NCBI RefSeq assembly: GCF_000315625.1
Contig: NW_005434599.1
Span: forward strand, 184,851-248,850
Direction of reading: 5' to 3'
Origin: Guillardia theta CCMP2712
Taxonomy: Eukaryota; Protista; Cryptophyta
DNA length: 64,000 nucleotides
In this document: in pieces, positions 18,301-64,000 of the stretch
Numbering within the stretch: the stretch's first letter is position 1
Layout of the letters: every line of letters starts with the position of its first letter
Made by a program: the position numbers and the translations under genes
Notes under the pieces: generated by a model
The model's input: only the letters and a program-made list of their open reading frames with translations
The model's database searches: none
What the model was told of the DNA's origin: nothing

Positions 18301-21300
18301 AGAAGAGGTTGCGCTTGAGGGTGGAGACGAGGATGCGGAGGCGGTCCTCCACCTCGTTAGCTGAGGAGCTAAGAAGGCGAACGAGTCAGCAGGTCAGTCC
18401 GGTCATGTTCCTCCTCCTCCTCTCCTCCTCCCACCCCCCCGCGCCTACCATCTTATCTTATAGCTGAGTCAGCGAAGCTCACGAAAAGATGCCTCCACAT
18501 CTATGTCACCTTTTCACTTGGTCACATCATTGATGAAGAATGGCGTAATCCCTTGAAAAATTTCCAACTTTATGTTCCTTAACAACAAAATACGAGTGAG
18601 AAAAAAAAAGTGGTTTNNNNNNNNNNNNNNNNNNNNNNNNNNNNNNNNNNNNNNNNNNNNNNNNNNNNNNNNNNNNNNNNNNNNNNNNNNNNNNNNNNNN
18701 NNNNNNNNNNNNNNNNCCTCCCTCCCTCCCCTCCCCCACCCCCCCCCCCCCCCCACCCCCCCCACTTCCTCCTCCTCCTCTACCTGTTCTTCAGGGTGTT
18801 CTGGAACTGGAAGATGTAGGTAGGGAGGTCGAACTGGTACATGTAGTTGAGGCTTTTGAGTGCCTGAATGAGGAAGAAGGTCCCTGACGCCGTCCTTGCG
18901 AAGGGCCTGTAGACCTCGCGCTCGTCGTCGAGCTTCAGCTGGAGTTCAGCTGAGTTCCTCAACGCATCCTTGATCTCAATGCTGGAGTTCTTGATGTCAG
19001 TGAGCTTCTGGATCAGCTCCTTGTTCTCCAGCACGTTGCCCTGCGACTCCGCCAGCTGCTGCAGGAGCTGCTTCTCGAGCTCGGAGAGAGACATCTTCAG
19101 CTCCTCCTCCTTCTGCAGCAGCTCGCTCTTCTCCACCTCGAGCTTCGGCTTCTCGTGCTGAATGGTGAGGGCCAGGAGCTGGCTTTCCAGCCCCGACTTG
19201 GTGATGCTGAAGTTGACGTCGGTGATAAGCGGCCTGCCGTCAGGAGGGACCTCGATGGAGGGGTTCCGGGTGATCATGAAGAACTTGAAGTTCTCGTTGA
19301 AGTCGATGAGCTTCTCTCCTATCTGGATCATCCAACGAGGGCCCTGCCGAACCAGGTCCTTCCTCAGCAGCGCGAACATGAAGGGCTCCAGCTTGTCAAC
19401 CTGCGCAGCATCCCAGTGAGCCACCAGCAAAGAATGGAAAGAGAAGGGAGTGAGGAGGAGGAGGAGGAGGAGGAGGAGGAGGAGGAGGAGGAGGAGGAGG
19501 AGGAGGAGGAGGAGGAGGAGGAGGAGGAGGAGGAGGAGGAGGAGGAGGAGGAGGAGGAGGAGGATGTATGTGTAGGGGATGAAGGGGGAGGGGGGCCAGG
19601 TGAAGAGGGGAAGAAAGGGGAGTTCGAGGATCCAAGAACGCTCTCACCTCCTCCATCACAAAAACCCTCCCGAAGCGGACAGACAGCTCGAGCTTCTGCA
19701 GGAACTTTGGGTCCTGCTGGGTCGTGGTCTCCAGAGGAAGCCCGGAGGTCTCCAGCATCGTCCTCAGCCACTTTGCCGCCTGAGTGGAGGGGTCGACGAT
19801 GAGGGGGTAGAGCTGACAGTTCTGGATGACGATGGCGTTCTCTGTCGACAGGTCGTCGCCCGGGAGGCCCTGGGACTTCCACTTGAGTCGCTCAGTCTCC
19901 GTGCTCATCTTGTCGATGAAGCGAAAGTCCCTCAGCTCCATCCTCTGGCACCACTCGAGCAAGTAGCGCGACCGCATGTCCTCCGGCATGCCCCCGAGGT
20001 AGGTGATGAAGGCGGAGGCTAGCAGCACGCTGAGCGGCAGCCGGCCCATCTGGTCGTTGAGGTCCTGCATCTGCAGCTTCCAACGGTCGTTCTCGTCCTT
20101 GAGCTTCCCCAGCAGGTTCTCAGCAGCGTCCAGCCTCTCCTTCACCTTCTTGTACTCAACGCTCAACTCCGCCGCCTCCTTCGTCAGCGTCTCGTACTCC
20201 GAGCTCAGCCTGCTCGCCGTCTCGTCGGCCTTTCTGATCTCCACGTCGCACTCGTTCTTCCTCTGCCTGGAGGACTCGAGCGACTTGTCCAGCTTCTGCA
20301 GCTGATCCTCTAGCGGCTTGACATGCTCTAGAGCAGCGGAGTACTGCACTTGCGCCTTCACCCAGGAGGCGAGGGGAGCCGCAGCCAAACTGACGCGCTG
20401 GATGTTCTCAGAGCGGAAGGAGGCAGCCTTCTGGTGGAGGAGCTCGAGGACTGACTCCCTCACGTCCCTGGTGATCTGCCGCGCGTCAAAGTTGAGGATC
20501 TCTTGGATGACTGACGGTTGAGAGATGAACCTCTTGATGCTAACCCACGACGTGTCCTGGTTGTTCATCAGCCTCAGCACGCCCTCCAGCACGTCTCTGA
20601 TGGACTCGGGCGGGAGTTTGAAGGATCGGATCTCATTCAAGTTGTCTTTCTTGATGTTTCCCACTGCCAGCTTCGCTGCTTCCAGGACGGGCTGGCACTC
20701 GGCCAGTTCGGACTCGACCTTGGCTCTCTTCTCCTGCATCTCGGCCTCCGACACCTTGAGCTTCTGGCTCAGCTCCTCGGCCTCGCTCCGCTTCTGCGTC
20801 GCCTCCTGCATGTTGAGCTTGATCTCCGACATCTTCTGCTTCGCCTGCGCGTCCTTCTCCTTGATCTGCAGCTCCTGGTCCGACGCGTTCTTCGACAGCG
20901 TCTCTACAACATCCCACGTCTCCTCCAACCTGTTCAGCCCTCCCTTCAAGAACGAGGTCTGCCGCTCGAGCTCTCCTCGCTTCACCTCGTAGAGCTTCTT
21001 GATGGTGTGCAGCAGCGTCACGTAGTCCCTCGGGCACACCGGCAGGCTGGTCACGCTCCAGTGCAGGAACTGCATGTTGTCAATCATGGCATCCGCGCTG
21101 TCCATCTGCTCCAACGTATCCTGAAGGAAATGCTTAGGGACGCGGCTCATCCCGTGCTTGGACCAAGTCTCGAGCCACAGGATGGTGCAGCGGGTGTAGA
21201 GGGCAGGGTTGCTCTCGCAACGGAGGAGGAAGTCCGGGTGCAGAGGGTCGAGGCTAAGGAAAATGTGGAGGTTCTTCTGCACCCTGCTGACGAAGAAGGA

Positions 21301-32070: not shown

Positions 32071-35000
32071 TCACTCCTTCCTTCCTCCTCCTCCCACGGC
32101 TCCTCCTCCAGCTCCTCCCCCATGAGCCACCTTGTTCGCATGTCCCGGGAGGGTGTTGTATCCAGAGCCGCTCCCTGCATGAAGTAAGCAAGGACAGGCT
32201 AAGGCAAGAGCTGGTACCTGGTTCGTGATTCCATCGGAAAGGTGTGATCACCTAACAGGGAAAGTCAAACTCTTTGCTCCTCTACCTCCCTTCCTCCCCC
32301 CCCTCTTCTTCCTCCTCCTTTCTCCCAGTCCTCCTCGTCCTCCTCGTCCTCGTCCTCGTCCTCCTCCTATTCCTCGTCCTCACACTGACCCGGCAGGACC
32401 CCACAATCTTCTGGTGCGTAGCTTCACTCCGCTCAACCTCTTGGACCTTCGCGCCTGTCAGTCTCTCCCTCCCTCCCNNNNNNNNNNNNNNNNNNNNNNN
32501 NNNNNNNNNNNNNNNNNNNNNNNNNNNNNNNNNNNNNNNNNNNNNNNNNNNNNNNNNNNNNNNNNNNNNNNNNNNNNGAGCGAGCGAGCGAGCGAGCGAG
32601 CGAGGGAGGGAGCGAGCGAGGGAGGGAGGGAGGGAGGGATTGAAGGAGGAGAAAGGAGGGAGGGACAGGGACGGAGGAGCGAGGAGGATGATCTTACCCG
32701 GACGATGACGGTCTTTCCCCATGGCTTCCTTCCTGGGATGCCGATGGCGGCGACTGGATGTCCATGCCCCTGCTCGCAAGGCTCACGGGGTTGTCAAAGA
32801 AGCAATCTCCTCACGTCGGGCCTCGAGTCATGCCCAGCAGCTCCGTTGGTCTTCTTCAGCAGCTGGGGCAGGGGGGTTCGATGTCAGCCGTTTCAGCTGG
32901 GGAGGAGGAGGAGGAACCTTTTCCCAGCTCAGCTTCGCGTCCTCGCAGAGCTTCAGCATGCGCCTCCCGTCGATTCCGCATCTGCGCTGGTGTGAGGAAG
33001 GGGGGAGGAAGAACAACGAAAGAGGAAGGAAGGAAGAGCAGGGAGGGAGGGAGGAGAAGGTGGGGGAGAGAGGAAGAGCGGGGGAAGGGGGGGGGCGGGG
33101 AACGAGGTAGGGGGAGAGAGGAAGAGCGGGGGGGAGGACGAGGGGCAGCTGGTGTGGGGAGGAGGGAGACTCACTTGGACAGGGCGTGCGCGACTTCATG
33201 GTTGAAGTTTCTCTCCCAGGCATCGAAACTTGTCACAGTCACAAGCTGGGACAGACAGTCAGAGAGCAGAGGGACAGGGGAGGAGGGAGAAGAGGACGAG
33301 GACGAGGAGGCGAAATAAGACAGGGCCACACGGGAGCCAAGGAAGGAGGAGAGGGCAGAGGGATTGAAGGGGGGGGGAGAGGAAATAGTATGAGGCTGAG
33401 GGACACACGAGAAGAGGAAGAGGGAGGAGGAAAGAGGAGGAAGGAGGAGGGAGGAGGAGGAGGGAGGAGGAGGAGGAGGAGGAGGAGGAAGGAGAAAGAA
33501 GGAGGTAGGAAAGGGGGGAGGAGGGACGAGGAGGACAGTGCATGGTAGCACCTCATCGGTGGTGAGGGTGAGCAAGTAGTTTGCCAGCTCCTTGCAGTCC
33601 GCTACGCTCCCCCATGTGTCGTAGGTGCGATGGTGGAGCTGTAGAAAGTCCCTCGAGAAGACCGTCACCAGCAGCCCCCGCTCAGTCCCCACCTGCCCAG
33701 AGCTCAAACGGCTCTGCGCCTCCCCCCTGTGGGTGAGGACGAGCTTCCTCGGGGGCTCTAGGGAGACCTGCATGTCCTGCATGTCCTGCAGGTCCACGAG
33801 GAGCTTCTTGCTCGACCTGCTGCCCGTCTCTGCCTTCCTCCTCGTGCTCTTCGCTGTGATCCTCGTAATGGGCACGAACGCGGTGAGAGGAGAGCAGCGG
33901 CATTGAGCCTCCCACTCATCCTCCCGGTAGGACGAGGAGGAGCCGGAGAGGAGCTGCTGGCGCAGGACGTAGCCCGACGCGTGCTTGAACCTGCCTCGCG
34001 TCTCCTTCACCACCTTCTTGAGCAGACTCTTGGCCTCGTCGCTAACGTCGAGCGCGACTCCATGGATGACCGCCTTCCAGGCGTCCCCCACCTCCTGCTC
34101 CAAGTGCTTCACCTCGTCAAGGATGCGGTCGGCAGAGACGAGGGGGAGGCGATCTGTGATGATCCAGATGTCCGAGCAGTTGGACGCCACGCGCTCTATG
34201 TGCTCCAGCGCTGTGGTCCACTCCATCCTCCTGCCCTCCTTCGTCTCCACCGACAGGCTCATCTCGATGCTTCGCTTCGCCGTCAGGCTCTCGGCCTCCT
34301 CCCGCGGAGTCGCGTCTGCCTCTGCGTCCTCCTCTTGCCCAAGTCGAGCTAGCCAAGGAACAACCTCGGCCATGACCTCCTCCTCGCTCTGGGTGGAGAT
34401 CATACTCTCGGCGAGGTACGGGTTCTTGTTCTCGCACGAGAGGAGGTTCAGCCTCTCCATGGTGAGTGCATACCGGCTTCCTCCCTCCTGCGATAGCTCG
34501 CTGTGAAGGGCGCGAACGATGAGTCGCTTGACCGAGTCGAGCCGGAGAGGGTCGAGCACATCGAGGATGATGACCGGCGCCTGCCCGAGGCCCCGGCCGA
34601 AGACGGAGGAGACGGGGGGCTGGAAGCTGATTAGCTTCTCTGTCAGTTGCTGGCAGCCCGTTCCCCTGAGGGCGATGCAGGAGGGCCAGTAGTACTCCAC
34701 CACAGCTCGCCGAAAGTCCTCGCTGTGCAGCACCATGCGCTGCTCGCCGTTGCTGAAGCGGACGAGGAGGTGCGGGGAGAGGGCTTTCAGTATGAGCTCG
34801 CGCTGGATATCGGGGATCACGTGGTTGGGCCCCATGGTGAGGAGGAGGTTGTGCAGGTTGGAGGTAACGATCCCGTCGTCCCCGGACTGCAGCAGGACCT
34901 TGAGGATAATCTCCACCGCCCGCAGCTCGGGGAAGTCAGCGGCCTTGGGCGCCTCCTGCCTGAACTCTGAGCCGAACACGTTGAACTCCCGCTCCATCCA

Positions 35001-38000
35001 GGGGAGGAACTGCTTGAGGTAGAAGAGGAACAGCTTCTGATCCATCGAGTCGATCTCCGTCACCAAGTTGCCGGGCCGTGACTGCTGGCAGGCAAACAGG
35101 ACGAGGGTTTTGAGATACCGCGGGTTCCCGCTCTCACTCTTGAACATGCGCATGAACAAGCCTGTCGGCTGCCGCAGCAGGTGGCGGCCATGGCGGAGGA
35201 TCGTGGAGTAGATCAGTGAAGTGGCCTCTGGCTTCGACAGCTGCGGCAGCCTGACGACCTGCGCTCCCTTGGCGTCCTCGAGCGTGTCCGACCCCACCTT
35301 CAAGGTAGCAACGCACCATACGCGCACCTGGCTGCTCCGCAGCCTGCTCTGGACCTGCTGGAGGATTTCTCCGACGGACTCCAGCTCGGAGCTGGTCAGG
35401 CCATCGACGAAGAGGCCGAAGTTGTAGTTGAAGCCGCCCGAGTACAAGTCGAGGAGGACGGCGCGGAGGAGGTCGAAGGAGTTGGACTTGGGGCCTGGGA
35501 GGATCTTGTCTGCGAGCCACTGCTGGGCGAGGGAGTGGGACTGGAGCTCGAAGAGCTCGACAACGGAGTCGAGAATCTCCCGCACGAGGTGTAGGCAGAC
35601 GTCTTTGGAGGAGTGCCAAGGGGCCTTGTAGAAGGAGATGAGGAAGAGGTGGGAGGAGGACTCGAGGTACTTCTTGCGCCACTCCAGGTCACCTGTCCTG
35701 CTCTTGAGGAAGAGGAAGTGCTGAATGCTCAGCGAGAAAGTCTCGTGCTCTTGCTTGCCCGGCAGCGGGGACGCGGCGTCTCGCTCCTCAAACCTCTTGA
35801 GGCCCTGCCTGGGCGCCAGCTGGTTGGGGTTCTTCCTGGATTTCTTCTGGGCAGCCTGAGCGTCCGACTTGATCTGCTTCCTCAGCTCTCGCGCCTTGGT
35901 CCTCATCACGGATGCAACGCGAGCGAGCATGGTGGTCCTGCCCGACCCAGCAGGGCCGTGCAGCACGAAGAGGCTCCTCTTCTTCTCCTCCAGGGCCCCC
36001 ATGAGAACCTCGTAGGAGGAGTTGAAGATGCCGTCGCCTCGATGCCGCAGCTCGTTCCTGCTGTAGATCCCGTCAACCTTGAGCCACTCGCTCTCCTCCC
36101 CGCGGAAGAGGCTGCACATGCTCAGCAGGAAGTTGGTGAACTTCTCTCGCTCGCCCTCGTCCATGCTAAACCCCGAGATGCACGCGTTGCTCACGAGCTC
36201 CTCCTCGTGCCGCTCCTGCTCGAACCGCGAGATGGCATGGCAGTCCTGCAGGTGCAGTAGCTTGGGGGAGACGAGCCGTTCGAAGACGGAGAAGGTAGAG
36301 GAGAACGCGTCTAGCATGAAGCCGCAAAGCTTCTCTCTGCTCCACGACAGCTGAGTGCTGTACGACTCGACCGAAGACGGGAGGCTGAGGGTCACAGGAG
36401 CCGGCAGGTCGTCGATCTTGAGCTCGTTGGTGAGCTTCTGGATGGCAGCTCGTCCTGCTCCCTCATGCGGGTACACCACTAGGGCGTCGCCCTGCAGCTC
36501 GTGGAGGACCTGCCCGTCCTCCTCCACCACGCTCGTCGTGTAGACCCTCGAAAGCTTCCGGCAGGGGCTGAACTTGGAGGAGGTCATGGCAAGGAAGACG
36601 TCCTTCTCCTTGTTGCTCATCTCCTTGGCCGCTCGCTCGGCGTCGGAGAACACCTTCTCGTTGAGCGTGAAGGGAAGGCCGGAGACGAAGACGCGGCAGG
36701 AGGAGGAGGCAGGGTCGACGATGTTCAGGTAGACCTTCTTGGAGTTGGCCCCCCAGGGACGCGACCTATCGAAGCGGGAGGAGATGGTGGAGGAGATAGC
36801 GCGGTGCTTGTAGACGAGCACAGCAGAGTCCTTCTCCTGCCGCAGGGAGCTGAACTGCGACATTGGGACGAGGTTGAAGAACGTGTGCACCTCCTCTGTC
36901 TTCACATCCCACGGCAGCCCCGTCACCTTGAGGAACCCGACAGGGTCGTTATCCCCGCGCTCGATGATGACGCATCCTCCCGCACGCGCCCTGTCCAAGT
37001 CCGAGGTGGAGGAGGCTGCAGGAGCAGAGGAGTGCATGGAGGAGCGGACGAACTTGGCCTTGTGCATGTTCTCTTTGACGCAGAGCGCAAGCTCGGTGCT
37101 TTCGTACAGCAGCTCCGCCCATCCCGTGCTCTCTCCCTCCGCCCTCGAGCTGTTGGCATGCACGTTGAACTCCTTCAGGGGGATAGAGAAGGTCGACAGG
37201 ACCGTCTTCTCCTGCGTTCCCGGCGGGATGCCGACGACTTCAAGGAGCGTCAGGTCAAAGTCGTCGTTGACCATCGTGACGTACTCGTTGCCCGCGAGCT
37301 CACACCCCTTGATCCGCACGCTGATGGTATGGTTCCTCAGCTGCTGCTTCTGGGTGGCGAGCAGGGCAGCAAGCTGCGCCTGCTCCCCGCGGAAGGTGAC
37401 GACTGCGTTGCTCCCCCGGTTGCAGAGGAAGCTCAGGTGCGGGTCGATGTCGTCAAGGGTTATGGGCCTCTGCATCTCGAACGTCATCCCCTCCAGCAGC
37501 CTCTCCGTCATGTACTGCAGCCTCGGCTCGCTCGCGCTCTTCTCCCCCTCCTTCGCCTCCAGCCCCTTCACCAGCACTGAGCTCCACAGCACCCGCGCAT
37601 ACGCAGAGGTCTTGAGCCCCTCCAGCTCCAGCGAGAAGTCGCGGCAGCGCTGCCGCTCCCGGAGGGGCTTCAGCAGCTTCTCCTCCAACATGTCGGCATG
37701 CAGCCGATGCCTCGCCCGCTCGGCCTGCGGCAGATGCTCGAGGGAGAAGAACTCGCGGAGGAGCCCAGGGACCTCCCGTGCGAACCTTTCGCTCTCCATG
37801 CTCTTCCTGTCTCGGAGGAAGCACGTCAGCTCTGACTCTAGCTCTCCCTCCACCAGCAGCTTCTCCTCCCCTGCCGCGCCTTCCTGGGGACGGGCAGGAG
37901 GGAGAGGAGAGGCAGCACGCAGCTGTAGCTCGAGGCAGGAGGGCAGCTCGTCCTTGCCCGTGGGGCTCAGGCCGAGCTCCTTCAGCTCCTCGCTGCGAAG

Positions 38001-41000
38001 GGAGAGGAGCGAGAAGTTATCGCGGCTGAGCTGATCGTGGTAGATCTGCCCGATGACGAACATGCATAGGAGCCGCTGAGTCTCGTCCTCCAGCCGGAGC
38101 CTCGACCCCTTCACCTCCTCAGCAATCCTCCAGCTGAACTGATCTCGCATCCAGGCGAGCTCAGCTGGGATATTCCCCTCACAGGAGGTGAGAAGTCTCG
38201 GAAAGAAGCTCCAGTCCAGCCACACCAGGTCGATGCCAAATCGCCTGCTCGCCTTCCTCAGTGCTGGCAGCACGCAGCTGTGGAGGAGGGAGCGCTCGGC
38301 GAACGTGTCTTGCGGTGTCCCGCCAACGAAGAGCCGAGCAGGCACCAGCTCTCGTCCCTCCTCCTCCAGCCCCGTGATGACAACCTGCGAGCCTACACTC
38401 TTTCCCTTGAGCAGGTTCAGCCGCATGAGCTCGCGGACTTCATCCGCATACTTGACGGTGGGGAGAGCGATGGCGAACGCGGCGGACTTGCGGTGGGAGC
38501 TGCTGAAGTGCTTGTGGGAGGTGCGAGGTCGAGGAGAGGACGTCTTCCCGCTAGCCGCCTGCTGCGACGATGCCACTGAACCCCCGCTGTCCGTCCTCTT
38601 GAAGTCATCCGTCTCCGTCGTCTTGTCGTCGTCACTGTCTTCAGACTCTTCCACCGAGATGCGCAGGACGGCGGAGGAGCGGGAGGTGTCGACGGAGGCG
38701 ACTGAGACGCTGGCATGCTTGCACACGCACGTCATGTTGAGGAAGGAGCCCGCCGCAGCATGCAGACCGACTTTAATGGCCTCGACCCCCTGGTTGCCGT
38801 CTGCCGTGAACTTCACGCGCAGCAGGGCCTCGGACGCGTGCTCCTTGCTGCACAGGGCCTCTGCCAGGCACTCGAAGTTCTCCTCGCTGAATCTCGAGCC
38901 TGTCCAGTGCTTCTCGCAGAAGGAGGTCACGGCCGACTTCCTTGACTCCTTGAAGCCACTGACAAGCTTCTGCAGACTGTCGATGAACTTCTCCGCGTCG
39001 TTCTGCTTGCCCATCGCCAGGAAGATCTTGGTGTCGCGGAAGTGCGTCAGATTCCGCAGCCTGCTGACGGCAGTGACTACGTCCACACCCTCCAGCGGCT
39101 TCTCCGACTCGCCAAGGAGGCCGTTGGCCTGTTCGACGACCTTCTTGACAAGATTCTGAAGGTGCGGGTCCAGCGAGGGAGCTGACTTGATGACGTCAAA
39201 GAGGAAGCTGTCGTGCTCCTGCGCAAGGTGAGAGTAGTGGAGGAGGAGGTAGGACTTGAGAGGGTCCAAGAAGCTCAACTCCACCACGTCCTGGTTCTTC
39301 TCCATCCGCACCAGGCTGGTCAAGCACATCTCAAGGTCCCGCACGAGGAGGTGCAGCGCTCCCATGCGGATCTTGGCATGGCAGTAGTGGAGGTTCCTGA
39401 GGATGCGCGGGAGGAACTCGTATGCGTACTTCCCTCCGACTCGCGCCAGGTAGGGAGCGAGCTCGAGCAGCATCCTCGGCCTCTCTGCCCGCCATAGATG
39501 ATCGTCGAGGTGCGCAGGCTTGGAGATGCCCTCGTCTGCAAGCCAGGAGAAGACTTGCCTCTCCATCTGAAACATCCTCCGCGCGCTCTCCTGCTCCTGG
39601 AAGCTCACCTTCATCTCTTCCAGGGTCGGGAACCCGATCCTGATCGTACCCGCCACATCGAAGATCTTGTGCCGCTGAACAGTGACGGCAGGTATCACGC
39701 CGAAGAGCTCGTCCTCGGCTACCCAGTAGCTCTCGGCCTGCACTGATCCCTCCTCCTTGACGATCAGGTAGCGAGCGTTGGAGGCTCTCAAAGCGATACG
39801 ATGCCCTTCGTCGGTCGAGTGGACGGAGACCTCGAACGTGTCTCCCGCTAACATGCTCCCTGCTCCATGCGGCTTCGAGATGATCCGTCCATCAGCTGCA
39901 AGCGACCAGTACTTGCCCTGGTTCTTGGAGCGGATGGCAAACTCAAACGCCGTTTCGACCCTCTCCAGCTGGAAGATGCAGGCATCGGTAGCTGCGAGGC
40001 TGCGGGAGACAGCGCAGAGCTTCCCGTCGTTGGAGAGAGTCAAGATCCGGTTGTCGTTAGAGACGAGGCAGATGGCAGCGCCGGAGCACAACGTGAGGGG
40101 ACGGGACTCGGCCGCGCTCCTCTGCTTGCTCAGTGCAGGGATGAAGATCCCCCCGAGCTGGTGGAGGCCTCGCTCGCTGAAGCTGCCATGAAACCCTAGC
40201 AGGCGCATACCCTCTGGCGGCTTCAAGACGATCTCCGAGCCGTCGGTGATGCGGCCGAACTTGTACTCACTCGTCGTCACCTTCCCCGTCTCCTTGTCGA
40301 CCGCCGCCGTGACCAGTCTCAGCTGCCCGATGACCCCGGGAGCGAGCCGTTGGCTGATGACGTACCCGACTTCAAGGATCTCCTCCTCAGGCTTCAGCGG
40401 CTGGTTGATCATGACGGGCATGTTCTTTCCCAGGTCAACCGACCTCTTGTCGGGCTTTGCGCCGCGCTGACCCTCCCTGACGTAGGTCACCTGAAGGCCA
40501 TGGATGTGGCCGGTAGACCAGATGGAGATCTCAGACATCCTGCACTTGTGAGACAGATAGTCATCGAAGAAAGACCAGTCGTCAAACGTCTCTGCTCCCT
40601 GGGAGGATCCTGTCAATTCGCTCCGCACCACATTCGCTCTCACGCCGATCTCGTCCTCCTCTGCCTTCTTCCTCGCCTTCGCATCGCGAACGCGCTGCCT
40701 CTCTACCTCTGCAGATTCCTTCGCCTTGCGCTTTTCTTCCGCCAACGCGAGGGCCATCCTCTCATTCTGCAGCCTGATTCCATCATTCTCCTCCTCGATC
40801 AGCCGTGACCTCTTCCATGCTCGCAGTATCCCATCATCCCCACCAGAGATCAAGATGCTGTACGCATAAGGGATCTTGTGGAAGACAGCAAGACATCTGA
40901 CCGACGTGTTGGGCCCGTGACAGGACGCGAGTCTTTTCCCGCTCTCAATGTTCCAGGCCTTGATGGTTCCATCGCGATCCCCCAGGTACAACAAGCCGTC

Positions 41001-42161
41001 GATCCCGACTGCGGCTGCCCATGGATGGCAAGAGCAAGAAGGCTTCTCCTCGTCATTCTCTTCCGAATCTGCGTCAAGGCTGATGACGCGCTTGCAAGTC
41101 AGCGTCTCTCCCTCCCAAATCCGAACGCTCCCGTCCTCCGAGCAGCTGCAGAACCCTGCTGTCGAGTTCCTTCCATCTGCTGCTCTTGGGAAATCCGACT
41201 CCTTCCCAGGAAACTCGCAGCCGATCAAGCACGTCACAGCTTGAGTGTGACCTGTAAGGTTCTGCAGGCAGAGCCTCTTGCTCACGTCCCAAACTTTGAT
41301 CACGGAGTCGTACCCCGCAGACAGCAGAAAGCCGTTCACCACCAAGAGCGTCAGGATCGGCAACTCGTGCCCTGTCATCATCCCTGAGCACGCCATGCTC
41401 TCAACCTCCCAGATTCTTATCGTTCGATCGTTTCCTGCCGTCAAGACGATGTCATCGTTCATCCCACAGATAGCCCGAACGAACCCTGCATGTCCGTTGA
41501 GCGAGCCAACAAATTCAAACCCCTTCCGCAGGTCCCACACGTTGACAACCGAGTCCCATCCTCCAGAGAAGAGGTACGTGTCTTTCACCAGGCACAGACT
41601 AGCGACAGCTGCTGTGTGCGCCTGTATCGATCGCTGCGGCTTCGGGAACTTAGCCTTCCCCCCCTGCACCTCCAGTAGCTCCTCGAGTTGCCAAATGTGA
41701 AGGTTGCCGTCCATGTCCCCGGTGTACGTGAGACCATTGTGCGGGTTGTAGACTATGCTGCGGAACGGCGCTTCCTTGGTAGAAGAGCTACAGAAGAGGT
41801 GTCGTGCATACTCTGTGTCATTCCTGGGACCCCTCTTCCTCTCGGGTGAACCGAAAAGCTTTCTCGGGCTATCGCCTGACAGCAGCAGGGTTCTTCCCCT
41901 ACCTTTCCGCGAGGGAGAAGCTCCAACAATGCTCTCAAAGTGCTTCTGCATTTCTTTTCCGATCGCACTCTTGGCGTGCCGGAGAGGGGAGGCGTTCCCA
42001 GGCGTGCTCGCGTGCGTCTCATCCTTCTCTGCCTTCTTCCTCCTCGGGGTAGTGAGCACAAGCCTCCTCCCGCTCTGAGGGCGAGAGCTTGCCAGCAGTG
42101 ATGTCACTCTGTGCGGGCTGCTAGCTGTCTTGGGCCTGGACGGAGAAGACGCACTCGCCAT
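32071..42161 (-). CDS. Giant multidomain STAND/NACHT-like protein: WD40 - coiled coil - jacalin-like - fascin-like - DUF4062-like - RRM-like x~4 - NACHT-like - vWA-like - ILEI-like
   Basis: 8610-nt first exon (33552-42161) followed by several short exons. WD40 repeats (AHTAAV..LFSGGWDSVVNVWD; GHAGFV..IRIWE; GHELPI..IKVWD), P-loop GPAGSGRTT, Walker B-like LFVDGL and GNPRYL. The 3' end crosses an N gap, so the stop at 32071 is tentative. Confidence 0.85.
32478..32577. other. Assembly gap (100 N)
   Basis: Run of n. Confidence 1.
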
Positions 42162-59300: not shown

Positions 59301-61625
59301 GGGCTGAAGAAGCTGTTCAGCTCGTTTCTTCCCTCCTTTGCCTTTCCCTGGGGAAAGTTTCACGGTCGCGACGACTGTCTGGCGGGTGAGGAGGATTGAG
59401 AGGTCCCAACCCTCACGCTCAAGTTGCCGCAGCTGAGACATGCATCATGTTCTTCCTCACTGGCACACAACTCGGTTTCCACGGTCCCTCCAACGCCCCC
59501 CCCCCCCCCACCACCACCACCACCAAACACACACACTCATCCTCCTCCTCCTCCTCCTCCTCCTCCTTTCTCATCTTTTTCCTTCAGTTTTGGCCATCGC
59601 CGCCTGTCCACTTGCTCTCAACTGTCGAAAGACTCCTCTTCGCCAAGGACTCACAGCTCTTTCGACACCTCGACAAGGTTCTTCTCGCCTCCTACTCCTC
59701 CTACTACTCCTCCTACTCCTCCTACTCCCTACTCTGCCGCCGCCAACACCTTTCCCTCGTCCTCCTCATCCCCCATCCACCCTCTCTTCCTTCTCTTTCC
59801 TCTCACTTTCCCTCCTTGCAAGCATCTTGCCCTTACTTGATTCACAGATTGGCCTCAAACCTCAGGATTACATGTGGCCGCTCCTACGAAGTGCCTTCTC
59901 GGAGGTTTGAAACCTCAACTCAGTTCTCCTCTTCCTCCTTCCTCTTTCCTCCTTCCTCTTCCTCTACTCACCTGGCCTTCAGGTCCTTGACAGGAATTCT
60001 TGGCTTCACATCATGGATCATATTCTGGTACATCTCCTCCCCTCCTTCTCTCCCTTCTTTCAACCCTCCAGTTCATTTCCTCAAGTTGATTTGCTGCTTG
60101 CTTGTCCCCCCCCCTTCCCGCTCTCCCTTCCTTCCTCTGCCCGGCCCCTCACCCTACAAGCAGGTCAAGCCAACCTCTTTCATCTACTGCGTCCTCGTCG
60201 CCTTCCTCGTCCACTCGCGCGCAGCCATCATGTCATTGAAGAATCAATCGCAGGTAGGGAGAGGGAGAGAGGGATAGCAGGTTGACTGATTATGCAGATG
60301 AATCTGTTCCTCACGCGTGCCAATCCCGTCGATGCGAAAGTGATGGGGAGGAGGGCAGAAGGGGGGGGGGGGGGGGGGGCAAGGGGCGAGGAGGTTGGTG
60401 GATGGAAGGTCGGANNNNNNNNNNNNNNNNNNNNNNNNNNNNNNNNNNNNNNNNNNNNNNNNNNNNNNNNNNNNNNNNNNNNNNNNNNNNNNNNNNNNNN
60501 NNNNNNNNNNNNNNGCTGGTAAGTGCATTCCTGCACACCCTTCCTCCTCCCCCTCGTCTTTTCCTCTGGTTCCTTTGGCGTCCTCCTCCTCCTTCCTCCT
60601 CCCCTCCCCTGTCCCATCCTCTCCTCTCCTCTCCTCTCCTCTCCTCTCATCATCCTCATCCTCCTCCCTCATCCTCCATCCTCCCCTCTCCTCTCCTCTC
60701 CTCTCCTCTACTCTCCTCTCCTCTCCTCTCCTCTCCTCATCTACCCTTGCCCTTGTAATCTCCACCTGCAGGCCAAGAGAGAGCAGATGAATCACATTCA
60801 AGAGCTCAACAGGCATGGGGAAGGAGCAGCCTCACCTCTCAAGTGACGAGGGCGCAGGGAACGACGAGAGCGCATGCGCAAGATGGAGGAAGAAACGAAG
60901 CTGTCGAGACTAGAGAAGGTCAGGGAAGGGCGGGGGGGGGGAGGAGGAGGAGGGAGACTGGAGCTAATGCAGCATGTGGCAGATCAAATGGATGGCGGAG
61001 AAAGTCTGCTCCTCCTCTCTTCCCCTCCCCTCCCTGACATGCTTGGGCAGGACGAGGCTCAACGGCAGCTGATCGTGGAGCGACAGCAGCAGGTGCGAAG
61101 GCAGAGGACAGCTCCCATCCCCTCACTCACGGGCAGATGCTGCGCGAACTGGACGAGCAGGAGGCGGAGAGAGAGGAAGCAGAGAACGAGTGGCTACAGG
61201 TTCCCTGGCAGTCTCCTCTCCTCACCTCCCTCTCTCCTCTCCTCTCTTTCCTTGCCTCTGCTCACGCTCTCCTTTCAGTCTCGCCTCGAGCGCGAGGAGC
61301 TCGAGCAGCTAGAGTTTCAAACCTTTCTTCACTTTCGAGAAGGTTCACAGAAGACCATCCAGAAGAGTCAGGTTCTGTTCTTTCCTCCCCTCCTCCCCTC
61401 CTCCCCTCCTCTCCTCTCCTCTCCTCTCCTCTCCTTCCTCTCTCCCTCGATGTGACTGGAGGGCAGGAACTGGGGCAGCAAGCGGAGCTCGAGGCTCGCC
61501 GACGGATGCAGCAGCTCCAAGTGAAGGCGGCGGAGGAGAGGTAGAGGAGAGCGTGCGATGCCTGCCGTTGGTGACGGGGAACAGATGGGAAGCAGAAGAT
61601 GAGCAGATGGCAGCAGCAAGACGGT

Positions 61626-61657
<32 letters not shown>

Positions 61658-64000
61658 GGAGGGAGGAGGAGGAGGAGCAGCAGCAGCAGCAGATCTGAAG
61701 GAATGGCAGGCTGATGATGGAGGAGACGAATCAGCATCTGGCTCTCCATGCTCAGGTGAGCTGCTGCTACAAGGAAGAACGAGTGACGGGGACACAGACG
61801 GAGACGAAGATGACGGCAGAGTGCCAGATGAAGGTGAGGGAGGAGGAGGGGAAAGAGGCGAGGAGAGGAGAGGAGAGGGGAGGGGAGGGGAGGGTAAGAG
61901 GAAGGGAGAGGGAGAGAGGGGGAGGAAGTACTGAGTTTGATCCAGCTGGAGGATGAGCGACTCAAGAGCATGTTGCACAGCATCGACCTGAAGCGACGAG
62001 CGAGACTCTTGACAGAAGAGCAGAGCTCGCAAGCTCAGCGACGAGAGGTGACGGGGGGACAGGACGAGGACGAGGAGACTGACTGATGGTCGTGCAGGAC
62101 GAGGAGGCTAGGCTGGAGAGGACAATGGTTGCGCAGGTGAAGGAGGGGGAGAAGAGGAAGGGGGGGGGAGGCTGTGCGGTTGCTCAGAAGGGCATCAGGA
62201 AATGCGACAGCTGGAGCAGGTCGTCAAGTACAAAGATCTCGAGATGCAGAAGATGATGGTAAAACCTCCTCCCTCCTCCCTCCTCCCTCCTCCCTCCTCC
62301 CTCCTCCCTCCTCCCTCTTTCTCTTGCTGTTCTCTCCGATCGCCTTCGCTTCACTGTTCCTCCCTTCCCTTCCTCTCCCCTTGACTCTGCTCCCTCACTT
62401 CGATCGCTTGCAACAGACTGAAAAAGCTGAGATGATACGCGCGGAGAGAAAAAGAATCGAGCAGAAGAAGGTTGTTCCTCTCCTTGCCCACTCCTATTTC
62501 TTCTTCTTCTTCTTCTTCTTCTTCTTCTTCTTCTTCTTCTTCTTCTNNNNNNNNNNNNNNNNNNNNNNNNNNNNNNNNNNNNNNNNNNNNNNNNNNNNNN
62601 NNNNNNNNNNNNNNNNNNNNNNNNNNNNNNNNNNNNNNNNNNNNNNTCTTCTTCTTCTTCTTCTTCTTCTTCTTCTTCTTTCTCTTCTTCTTCTTCTTCT
62701 TCTTCGTCATCCTCTTCTTCGTCATCCTCTTCTTCTTCTTCTTCTTCGTCATCCTCTTCTTCGTCATCCTCTTCTTCATCATCCTCTTTCTCTCTCCCCC
62801 TCTCTGTCCCCTCTCTACTCTGCGAAACCTCATCATTTTATCCCTCTCCTCCTCCTCCTATTTTATCCCTCTCCTCCTCCTCCTCCTCCTCCTCCTCCTC
62901 CTCTTCTGCCTTCTAGATTCGATTGTTGACGATTGTCTCGTCAGATGGAACGTTATCGACATCTCCGCCTGCTAGAAGTAATGCAATGCTCCTCTCGTCT
63001 GTCTGCACTCTCAACCCTCCCTCCCTCCCTCCCTCCCTCCCTCCCTCCTCCTCTTCTCTCCTCCTCTCATGATCGAGGTTTTGCCAGGCAAGGAATCGCA
63101 TCCGCGACTTCGAGTCTCAGCTGAGCAGAGAAGGAGCAGCTTGGAAGGTTCTGTCTTCCCTCCCTCCCTCCTCTTGTTCTTCTTCCTTCCTCCTCCCATG
63201 CTTCGTCTTCTCCCTCCATCCTCTCGTCTCCTCCCCTCTTCTCTCCTCTAACTTATTCTCCTCAGCTTGCGGCCTCGCACTACGAGCAGGAGGTGGAGGA
63301 CAACCTGCTGTCCCTGCAAGCAGAAAGGAAGCAGCTGGTACCTTCCCCCTCACCTCCTCCTCCCTTTCAACTCTTCCTCCCCGTCACCTCCTTGTCCAAC
63401 AGGAGATGCTCGACGCCGAGATCGCTGCGCGGGAGCGGGAGCTTAGGATGAAGGAGGAGGTGAGGAGGAGGAGGAGGAGGAGGAGGCTGAAGGATGAGGA
63501 AGGACCTGGAGCTGCGCGACTTCGAGCACGAGGGGATGCGACGGTCCGTGCAGGAGGCCCAGCGGGGCCAGCAGGAGGAAAGAAGCGCGAGAGAGTCGCA
63601 GGAGAGGACAGCTGGAGATGATATCGAGGACTCCTCGGGAAACTCGAGCGAATGGCTCGTTGGCATGGCCAAGGCAGCAAGGGAGGAAGAGAGAAGCGGC
63701 AGGGAGAAGGAGCTGATGGGAAGAGAGAGGAGAGAGGAGGAGGAAGAGGAAAGGAGAAGGAAAAGGCCTGGAGAGCGAGGATACTGGCAGATGCGAGCTC
63801 AGCTTGCTGGAGTTGAGCTCGGGAGGAAGGAAGAGGGGTTCAAGAACAGGCAGGAGACAGGGGTAGGTAACATGCTTCCTGAATGTGTGCGTTGACTGCA
63901 AGGCAGGTGGCAATTGAGGTGCCAGGAGGAAGCGAAGTGAAAGTGAAGCTGTCGGGGCAGGTGACTCGGAGGAGGAGGAGGAGGAGGGGAGGGGAGGGGA
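56363..64000 (+). CDS. TBC1D31: TBC1 domain family member 31 (WDR67)-like: WD40 + Rab-GAP TBC + long coiled coil; intron-rich, 3' end beyond window
   Basis: GDIFVFHLRGNRFSLVGR, HKHAISCLELHPRG, RLLAFLDIHDNFPERFREQVYRQLLRLPRN, WPSPPVHLLSTVERLL..DSQLFRHL and YMWPLLRSAFSE resemble TBC1D31 segments; E/R/Q-rich 3' exons follow. Confidence 0.85.
60415..60514. other. Assembly gap (100 N)
   Basis: Run of n. Confidence 1.
62498..62785. repeat. (TTC)n microsatellite with an internal 100-N gap (62547-62646), intronic
   Basis: Directly visible. Confidence 0.95.

Follow-up and report, generated by a model that had tools for sequence, protein, structure and literature searches.

A single gene of approximately 3,040 codons, with at least eight exons, lies on the minus strand at 32071..42161 of the 64,000-nucleotide stretch of Guillardia theta CCMP2712 DNA analysed here (contig NW_005434599.1, positions 184,851 to 248,850; hereafter the window, to which all coordinates refer unless another contig is named). 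Its product would be a single cytosolic protein, about 3,040 residues long, that appears to be a diverged and rearranged branch of the TeTIR(DUF4062)-STAND superfamily, which includes TEP1, NWD1/2 and NPHP3. The protein opens with a WD40 beta-propeller, continues with jacalin-like and fascin-like domains and carries a central module in which a diverged DUF4062/TeTIR/NIR-like domain and a STAND-type NTPase are separated by four RRM folds. We propose, at about even odds (a probability of roughly 0.5), that this single-copy gene encodes an assembly scaffold resembling TEP1, NWD and NPHP3, and not a typical immune receptor. We favour this reading because the gene is single-copy and colinear with its relatives, because no copy has the two arginines essential to TEP1, and because an arginine stands in the Walker A motif of the Guillardia theta protein.

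An exhaustive HMMER search with residues 1270–2469 matched 21 proteins, all of them fragments. One was identical, namely the 236-residue public model for the Guillardia theta genome (P0001); another, KAJ1471456.1, is annotated as a hypothetical protein (592 residues) and comes from the cryptophyte Baffinella frigidus CCMP2293, and the remaining matches were all metagenomic. A word-indexed protein search recovered only the 236-residue fragment from the genome itself. The contigs behind the fragments were searched by tblastn with residues 1–2883, and a scan of metagenome contigs yielded one further locus. Six other loci are colinear with the window gene, in pieces that are 24–37% identical to it. 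The most complete are two JGI metagenome loci (L002, query residues 6–2875 in 11 pieces, all in order; L008/L009, residues 15–2684, with a 1,454-codon open frame running across the RRM block, the NTPase and the next domain) and a Tara Oceans locus (L006/L007, residues 4–2855, with 36.8% identity over residues 4–926, E 1.6e-169, and a 2,048-codon open frame). Two further JGI loci cover residues 6–2357 (L004, which reaches the contig end) and 1191–1956 (L005, a short contig), and the Baffinella locus (L003, MU647161.1, 81022–103001) covers residues 780–2850, its upstream part being without public annotation. The family is known, then, from two cryptophytes (Guillardia theta and Baffinella) and five metagenome contigs. 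Within its own genome (87.1 Mb scanned, in 669 contigs) the giant gene is present as a single copy.

An uninterrupted reading frame and a domain order that recurs colinearly in six independent loci make it very likely that we are dealing with one real conserved gene, and not with a chimera or a run-on of separate genes. A preliminary description, made from the sequence alone, had named chimeric assembly as one of the results that would overturn it and had proposed looking for the same domain order elsewhere; the colinear orthologues reject the former, and the order is indeed found in six loci, including that of the cryptophyte Baffinella. Public annotation of the family consists of fragments, with 236 residues here and 592 C-terminal residues in Baffinella, where some 10 kb of upstream coding sequence carries no model. 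Downstream of the Baffinella orthologue (approximately 12100–12700 of L003) lies a long tandem array that reads as 'TLNPKP' repeats in all frames.

The core of the gene is a minus-strand open reading frame (ORF) of 2,996 codons from ATG to stop (42161->33171), without internal stop and set in a stop-to-stop frame of 3,004 codons, which bears out the single ORF of about 3,000 residues first described. The ATG at 42161 is sound, since the tblastn alignments of the orthologues begin at residues 4–6 of the ORF. Not all of the frame is coding. Exon 1 (residues 1–2870, 33552..42161) ends at the donor GAG|GTGCTA (33552/33551), where L002 is contiguous (...TPSETVVITSFDAW...), and the last 126 codons of the ORF comprise a 306-nucleotide in-frame intron followed by exon 2. 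This intron 1 (33246..33551, GTGCTA...TCCCAG) is CT-rich and stop-free, its acceptor border is TCCCAG|CTT at 33246/33245, and the stretch is missing from both L002 and L006. Residues 2871–2972 of the ORF, 102 proline/serine-rich codons, are intron read-through because the residues on either side are contiguous in L002: ...TPSETVVITSFDAWERCF... is unbroken there, while in the window the 102 codons part ...TTDE from LVTVTSFDAWERNF.... Because the intron is in frame and stop-free, about 102 spurious proline/serine-rich residues enter the protein when ORFs are simply scanned for. The L002 segment 'CSASIRVLGSKGG' was considered as an exon and rejected as intron, the true next exon being CGIDGR....

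The 3' exons, all on the minus strand, were compared individually with the orthologues by tblastn, and GT-AG ends were found at all introns read. Exon 2 (LVTVTSFDAWERNFNHEVAHALS; 33175..33245) matches L006 (2.5e-9), L002 (4e-8) and L008 (2e-7), and the apparent stop of the long ORF is the GTGAGT donor of the intron that follows it. Exon 3 (CGIDGRRMLKLCEDAKLSWEK; 32918..32981) matches L002 (2.8e-11) and L006 (1.4e-17), exon 4 (LLKKTNGAAGHDSRPD; 32815..32862) aligns at equal length with L006 LYKALGCDPGDDARPQ, and exon 5 (GHGHPVAAIGIPGRKPWGKTVIVR; 32698..32769) matches L008 (1.5e-10) and L002 (1.9e-5). Exon 6 (…AKVQEVERSEATHQKIVGSCR; 32390..32454, 5' end uncertain) is weakly like ...AQGRVVGVCK of L002/L006, with a non-significant tblastn score, and ends at the donor CGG|GTCAGT. 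Exon 7 (VITPFRWNHEP; 32218..32251) corresponds to VVTPMRYHHE of L002 (E 0.005) and exon 8 (…SGSGYNTLPGHA…RKE*; 32071..32174) to GDGAAYNTLPGHA of L006 (E 1.2e-4); its TGA (32073–32071) ends exactly where the preliminary description had placed the end of the gene. Three of the introns in this tail are very short (32175–32217, 43 nucleotides; 32770–32814, 45 nucleotides; and 32863–32917, 55 nucleotides; all GT-AG).

An assembly gap (32478..32577) lies between exons 5 and 6. A position within the long ORF was considered and rejected, the gap being 594 nucleotides 3' of the ORF stop. Exon 5 ends in phase 0, while two bases remain at the acceptor beyond the gap and call for one more from the exon before it; moreover, approximately 22 orthologue residues (L006: D-D-L-T-R-F-G-S-P-A-D-L-T-V-D-L...) have no counterpart in the window at this point. 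From the phase mismatch and these unseen residues it is most likely that the gap conceals about 22 codons, either as a small separate exon or as the beginning of exon 6, which leaves the frames on its two sides unlinked. On both sides of it the exons follow the same orthologues, with order and strand preserved. Three more 100-N gaps are present in the window (18617–18716, 60415–60514 and 62547–62646). Five runs contain 0.86–0.87 of the sampled words of 32600–38500 (four of these runs are only guessed to be RNA), a share suggestively close to the expectation for a transcript minus approximately 12% intron sequence.

The domain that ties the protein to TEP1 spans residues 1270–1400 (37962..38354, minus strand), with its motif starting at residue 1275. 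The Pfam model for DUF4062 (PF13271) finds no match in the gene up to E 1, but a profile of eight orthologous segments matches a single PDB chain, 11gz_A, 'Telomerase protein component 1' (TEP1), with E 1.1e-5 across the motif block FVGG..ED..ER..L..VLPAL......I.L.W.DW. An hhalign comparison with six genuine DUF4062 domains encoded elsewhere in the genome gave a probability of 91.9% (E 7e-7, 84 columns), with an alignment that extends to the CL.E...C helix and the hhhhhG strand. Profile homology thus confirms this segment as a diverged DUF4062/TeTIR member, as had been read from the letters. At least eight other canonical DUF4062 matches occur in the genome, none of them in the giant gene, in open frames that reach 4,061 codons (L010–L023); they include C11:477271-477531, C87:185607-185867, C49:304089-304349, C35:156520-156783, C160:79242-79538 and C1:1005000-1005245. 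Three are followed by GPxGSGK[ST] NACHT/NPHP3_N or nSTAND1 modules, and, judging by sequence, the set appears to form a TEP1/NWD-like gene family within this alga.

DUF4062/TeTIR/NIR domains were recognised in 2026 as TIR-like NADases, acting as NADase effectors in bacterial defence and in TEP1. NADase activity of TEP1 needs F902, R914, R942, C959, R976 and E1008, and the R942 and R976 mutants are inactive. We mapped these mutagenesis residues onto the profile–PDB and hhalign alignments. The counterparts of F902 and R914 are retained in the family. The position of R942 (RWG loop), by contrast, is occupied by His in all orthologues and that of R976 (GE[RK]YG) by neither Arg nor Lys in any of them, while the C959 position holds Cys in four of seven orthologues and Ile in Guillardia theta. 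The helix that carries E1008 is not reliably alignable; the candidates are I-D-E-Y and P-S-L-L-E-L, and at neither is there an invariant Glu among the orthologues. The placement of the domain is also unusual. For the TeTIR family the stated rule puts the domain immediately ahead of NACHT; here it ends at about residue 1400 and Walker A lies at residue 2069, with four RRM folds between.

These RRM folds (residues ~1526–1616, 1638–1707, 1732–1814 and 1812–1911; 36429..37586, minus strand) were recognised from predicted structure and Foldseek. An AlphaFold model built on the orthologue alignment has a mean predicted local distance difference test score (pLDDT) of 53, with most of residues 1633–1827 at or above 70 apart from one low-confidence loop, and retrieves tandem-RRM proteins such as raver1, U2AF65, HuR and Sxl. 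With less confidence, both outer units can be seen to share the beta-alpha-beta-beta-alpha-beta pattern and the 'GLP' signature. At the sequence level the Pfam RRM model (PF00076) stops just short of its cut-off (19.7 vs 20.7 bits), and single-sequence PDB searches of the central parts gave only generic P-loop and weak RRM matches. In the orthologue alignment the fourth RRM has a good RNP2 (RVFVSGLPF) and the third a non-aromatic RNP1 (SAVLVYKH). The RRM-like repeats of the preliminary description are, then, RRM-fold domains in a block (~1526–1911) between the two core domains.

The NTPase module (residues 2042–2524; 34590..36038, minus strand) combines a nucleotide-binding domain, a helical domain and a winged helix, and is recognised as STAND-type by both the Foldseek and Atlas searches. 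Its Walker B-like motif LFVDGL (residues 2250–2255; 35397..35414, in the context LFVDGLTSSE) aligns with the NACHT Walker B, and hhhhDG is kept in all orthologues, which read hhLDG here; GNPRYL follows at residues 2345–2350. A lysine-rich insert brings the distance between Walker A and Walker B to approximately 170 residues. When compared by hhalign with the NACHT/NPHP3_N modules that follow canonical DUF4062 domains in the same genome, the module aligned from Walker B on (90.5%, E 1.3e-6). Pfam scores fall below the cut-offs for NACHT (12.9 vs 26.7 bits), NPHP3_N (16.9 vs 24.8) and the best match, nSTAND_NTPase5 (22.8 vs 34), and ORC/Cdc6 AAA+ proteins score nearly as high in the fold comparison, so that the fold does not fix the STAND clade. 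Of the NACHT-like P-loop first proposed, the STAND/ORC-Cdc6-like fold stands, whereas NACHT itself stays below its cut-off and no clade is chosen; the pairing of a DUF4062-like domain with a STAND NTPase, the core of TEP1, NWD and NPHP3, is supported.

The Walker A motif, GPAGSGRTT (residues 2069–2077; 35931..35957, minus strand), departs from the consensus GxxxxGK[ST] in Guillardia theta. Residue 2075 (35937–35939) is Arg, whereas Lys stands there in each of the four orthologues whose sequence reaches the motif (GSGKT, GCGKS, GSGKS). Replacing the Walker A Lys by Arg is used experimentally to disable Apaf-1 and NOD-type switches. The Arg here may reflect either a genuine loss of switching or an erroneous base.

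The N-terminal arm, also on the minus strand throughout, holds three domains that pass the Pfam cut-offs. The WD40 propeller (residues 128–440; 40842..41780) reaches 3.2e-25 (87.9 bits against a cut-off of 27) and matches WD40 proteins of the PDB down to 1e-42. Next come a charged, coiled-coil-like helical linker read from the translation alone (residues 455–515; 40617..40799), a jacalin-like domain (residues 517–670; 40152..40613; PF01419, 30.5 bits vs 22, and 25.4 bits in L006) and a fascin-like beta-trefoil (residues 710–822; 39696..40034; PF06268, 40.7 bits vs 23.1, and 27.6–30.5 bits in L006, L004 and L002). An alpha-helical region with no Pfam match (residues 880–1240; 38442..39524) is possibly HEAT-like; its language-model neighbours in the Atlas are HEAT/ARM proteins, with a recognition of 1742 (< 2300), and we treat it as a lead only. 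The segments that the preliminary description had named are all found where it placed them, the propeller being N-terminal as it stated and WD40, jacalin and fascin each exceeding the Pfam gathering score, the latter two in orthologues as well. It had further spoken of glycan-, actin- and RNA-binding folds: the folds are present, and binding is suggested by their names only.

Two C-terminal assignments of that description are not demonstrated. The first is an alpha/beta, vWA-like region (residues 2530–2738; 33948..34574, minus strand) whose Atlas language-model neighbours are vWA families (0.91–0.92) and whose model alternates beta and alpha elements at a pLDDT of 37–58. Aligned by hhalign to ten bona fide vWA domains it gave P 0.03 and a probability of 1.6%, its hhhhSDR and TxGRF motifs falling in register with their hhhhTDG and GG. 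A reference of two vWA sequences returned no match, searches with Pfam and PDB profiles were likewise negative, and the DxSxS motif of the metal-ion-dependent adhesion site (MIDAS) was not found in the region, where D-V-L-D-P or D-V-E-N-P stands instead. The vWA assignment is therefore unproven. The same grade applies to the ILEI-like region, which is split by introns between the end of exon 1 and exon 5 (32698..33680, minus strand). PF15711 matches it below threshold (E 0.022, model positions 1–44, 15.7 bits vs 27), as it does the same place in L002 (E 0.059, positions 17–76, 14.3 bits); an ILEI-like PDB profile search gave nothing and a six-frame scan of the genome found no ILEI domain. The NCBIfam and PHROGs family libraries returned no matches.

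In the scaffold that we propose, the peripheral domains would bind partners or ligands, as in other STAND proteins, the nucleotide state would control whether copies of the central module assemble with one another as an oligomeric platform, and RNA or proteins would be held by the RRM-fold block. The protein would be non-enzymatic or weakly enzymatic, on the model of the inactive TeTIR of NPHP3 and the RNA-holding role of TEP1, and would not be expected to act as an NAD+-depleting immune executioner. Colinear conservation in single copy seems more typical of cellular machines such as TEP1 and NPHP3 than of the expanded families of immune receptors. Several points weigh against this proposal. 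The scaffold role is argued by analogy, and a single transcript spanning the gene is predicted. Residual enzyme activity may persist, as the catalytic-Glu helix aligns without confidence and five orthologues carry the I-D-E-Y motif at the candidate position. The orthologues keep the Walker A Lys, so the family overall may be an active switch. The RNP1/RNP2 aromatics of the RRM folds are just partly retained, and RNA binding is predicted. Finally, the two AlphaFold models, both resting on shallow alignments, have low mean pLDDT (53 and 59), the TeTIR-, vWA- and ILEI-like parts being poorly modelled.

An active NLR-like sensor of immunity or cell death seems unlikely to us; innate immunity was one of two roles that the preliminary description had raised as possible. 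On this view the WD40, jacalin, fascin or RRM domains would recognise a glycan, protein or RNA from a pathogen, the STAND module would oligomerise and the TIR-like domain would degrade NAD+ or make a signal, as in bacterial Avs-NIR proteins and plant TNLs. Its ingredients are there: a domain type that includes the NADase effectors of bacterial defence and TEP1, a STAND module, lectin-type and RNA-recognition folds that could sense, and orthologues with Walker A Lys and, in four of seven, Cys at C959; activity as a sensor is possible above all in orthologues with intact Walker A. It fits poorly, however, with a gene that is single-copy and colinear in distant relatives, unlike diversifying receptor families, with the missing counterparts of R942 and R976 in all orthologues, with the lack of an invariant Glu at either candidate catalytic helix, with the Walker A Arg of Guillardia theta, and with an effector domain that is internal rather than terminal.

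We think it quite improbable that the gene encodes an RNA–protein machine replacing TEP1, with the RRM block in place of TROVE and a small RNA held in a large particle. The inventory does overlap with that of TEP1 (TeTIR-like domain, STAND module, WD40 and perhaps vWA), four RRM folds are present, and the absence of any TROVE match, both in the protein and in a six-frame scan of the genome, makes such a role attractive. The RNP motifs are partly degenerate, though, and the vWA domain is unproven; a genome scan for the major-vault-protein shoulder was blank, but its control matched nowhere and the scan is hence uninformative. A further idea, which we offer as a long shot, is that the RRM block, placed between the TIR-like effector and the NTPase, is a built-in sensor through which viral or own RNA gates assembly, making the protein a eukaryotic STAND switch and, in the cryptophyte lineage, a TEP1 counterpart with RRMs for TROVE.

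An artefactual origin of the long ORF, whether as a chimeric assembly, as neighbouring genes run together or as a dead gene, is scarcely credible: a public model of just 236 residues and a gap in the 3' part might suggest it, but the frame is open across 9 kb, six independent assemblies keep the same order with the 2,048- and 1,454-codon frames crossing domain borders, the exons flanking the gap follow the same orthologues in order, and the word share in the five runs is suggestively what an intron-free transcript would give.

DUF4062/TeTIR/NIR domains link bacterial anti-phage systems with the little-understood human proteins TEP1, NWD1/2 and NPHP3. The family described here breaks the rule that TeTIR directly precedes NACHT, places RNA-recognition folds in the interval and has apparently lost key catalytic residues, and it therefore offers a natural experiment on the roles of TeTIR proteins beyond NAD+ cleavage. 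Given the fragmentary public annotation, surveys of domain architecture would miss it.

Among the closest known systems is TEP1, with which the protein shares the DUF4062/TeTIR-type domain (11gz_A, E 1e-5), a STAND NTPase and WD40 repeats (Beta-prop_TEP1_C, 37.8 bits vs 32, though many WD40 models cross-match), possibly a vWA-like domain, and a nucleic-acid-recognition type of module in the same chain. It differs in that WD40 is C-terminal in TEP1 and N-terminal here; in that TeTIR and NTPase are adjacent there, whereas about 640 residues with four RRM folds part them in the cryptophyte protein; in the TROVE domain at the TEP1 N-terminus, which has no equivalent; in the loss of the R942 and R976 counterparts; and in the extra jacalin, fascin and ILEI-like parts. 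With NPHP3, NWD1 and NWD2 the protein has in common a TeTIR-like domain, a NACHT-type STAND module and repeats (TPR or WD40 in those proteins), and with NPHP3, whose TeTIR is inactive, a TIR-like domain of catalytically degenerate appearance; the NPHP3_N/NACHT modules of the Guillardia theta genome align with its NTPase. N-terminal repeats, the inserted RRM block and the lysine-rich Walker A–B insert set it apart from these proteins, as do NPHP3_N and NACHT scores below the Pfam cut-offs. Plant and bacterial NB-ARC/AP-ATPase STAND proteins (NRC2, Apaf-1, Avs) differ too, with no sequence-level NB-ARC match and unrelated effector and sensor domains. Three 2026 preprints on the TeTIR/NIR family mention neither RRM nor cryptophytes, and the domain order was found in no paper searched, in keeping with the preliminary description's view of an undescribed architecture. 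What is known, in sum, is the TeTIR-STAND superfamily; what is new is an N-terminal propeller, four RRM folds that split the core, and attached jacalin-like and fascin-like domains.

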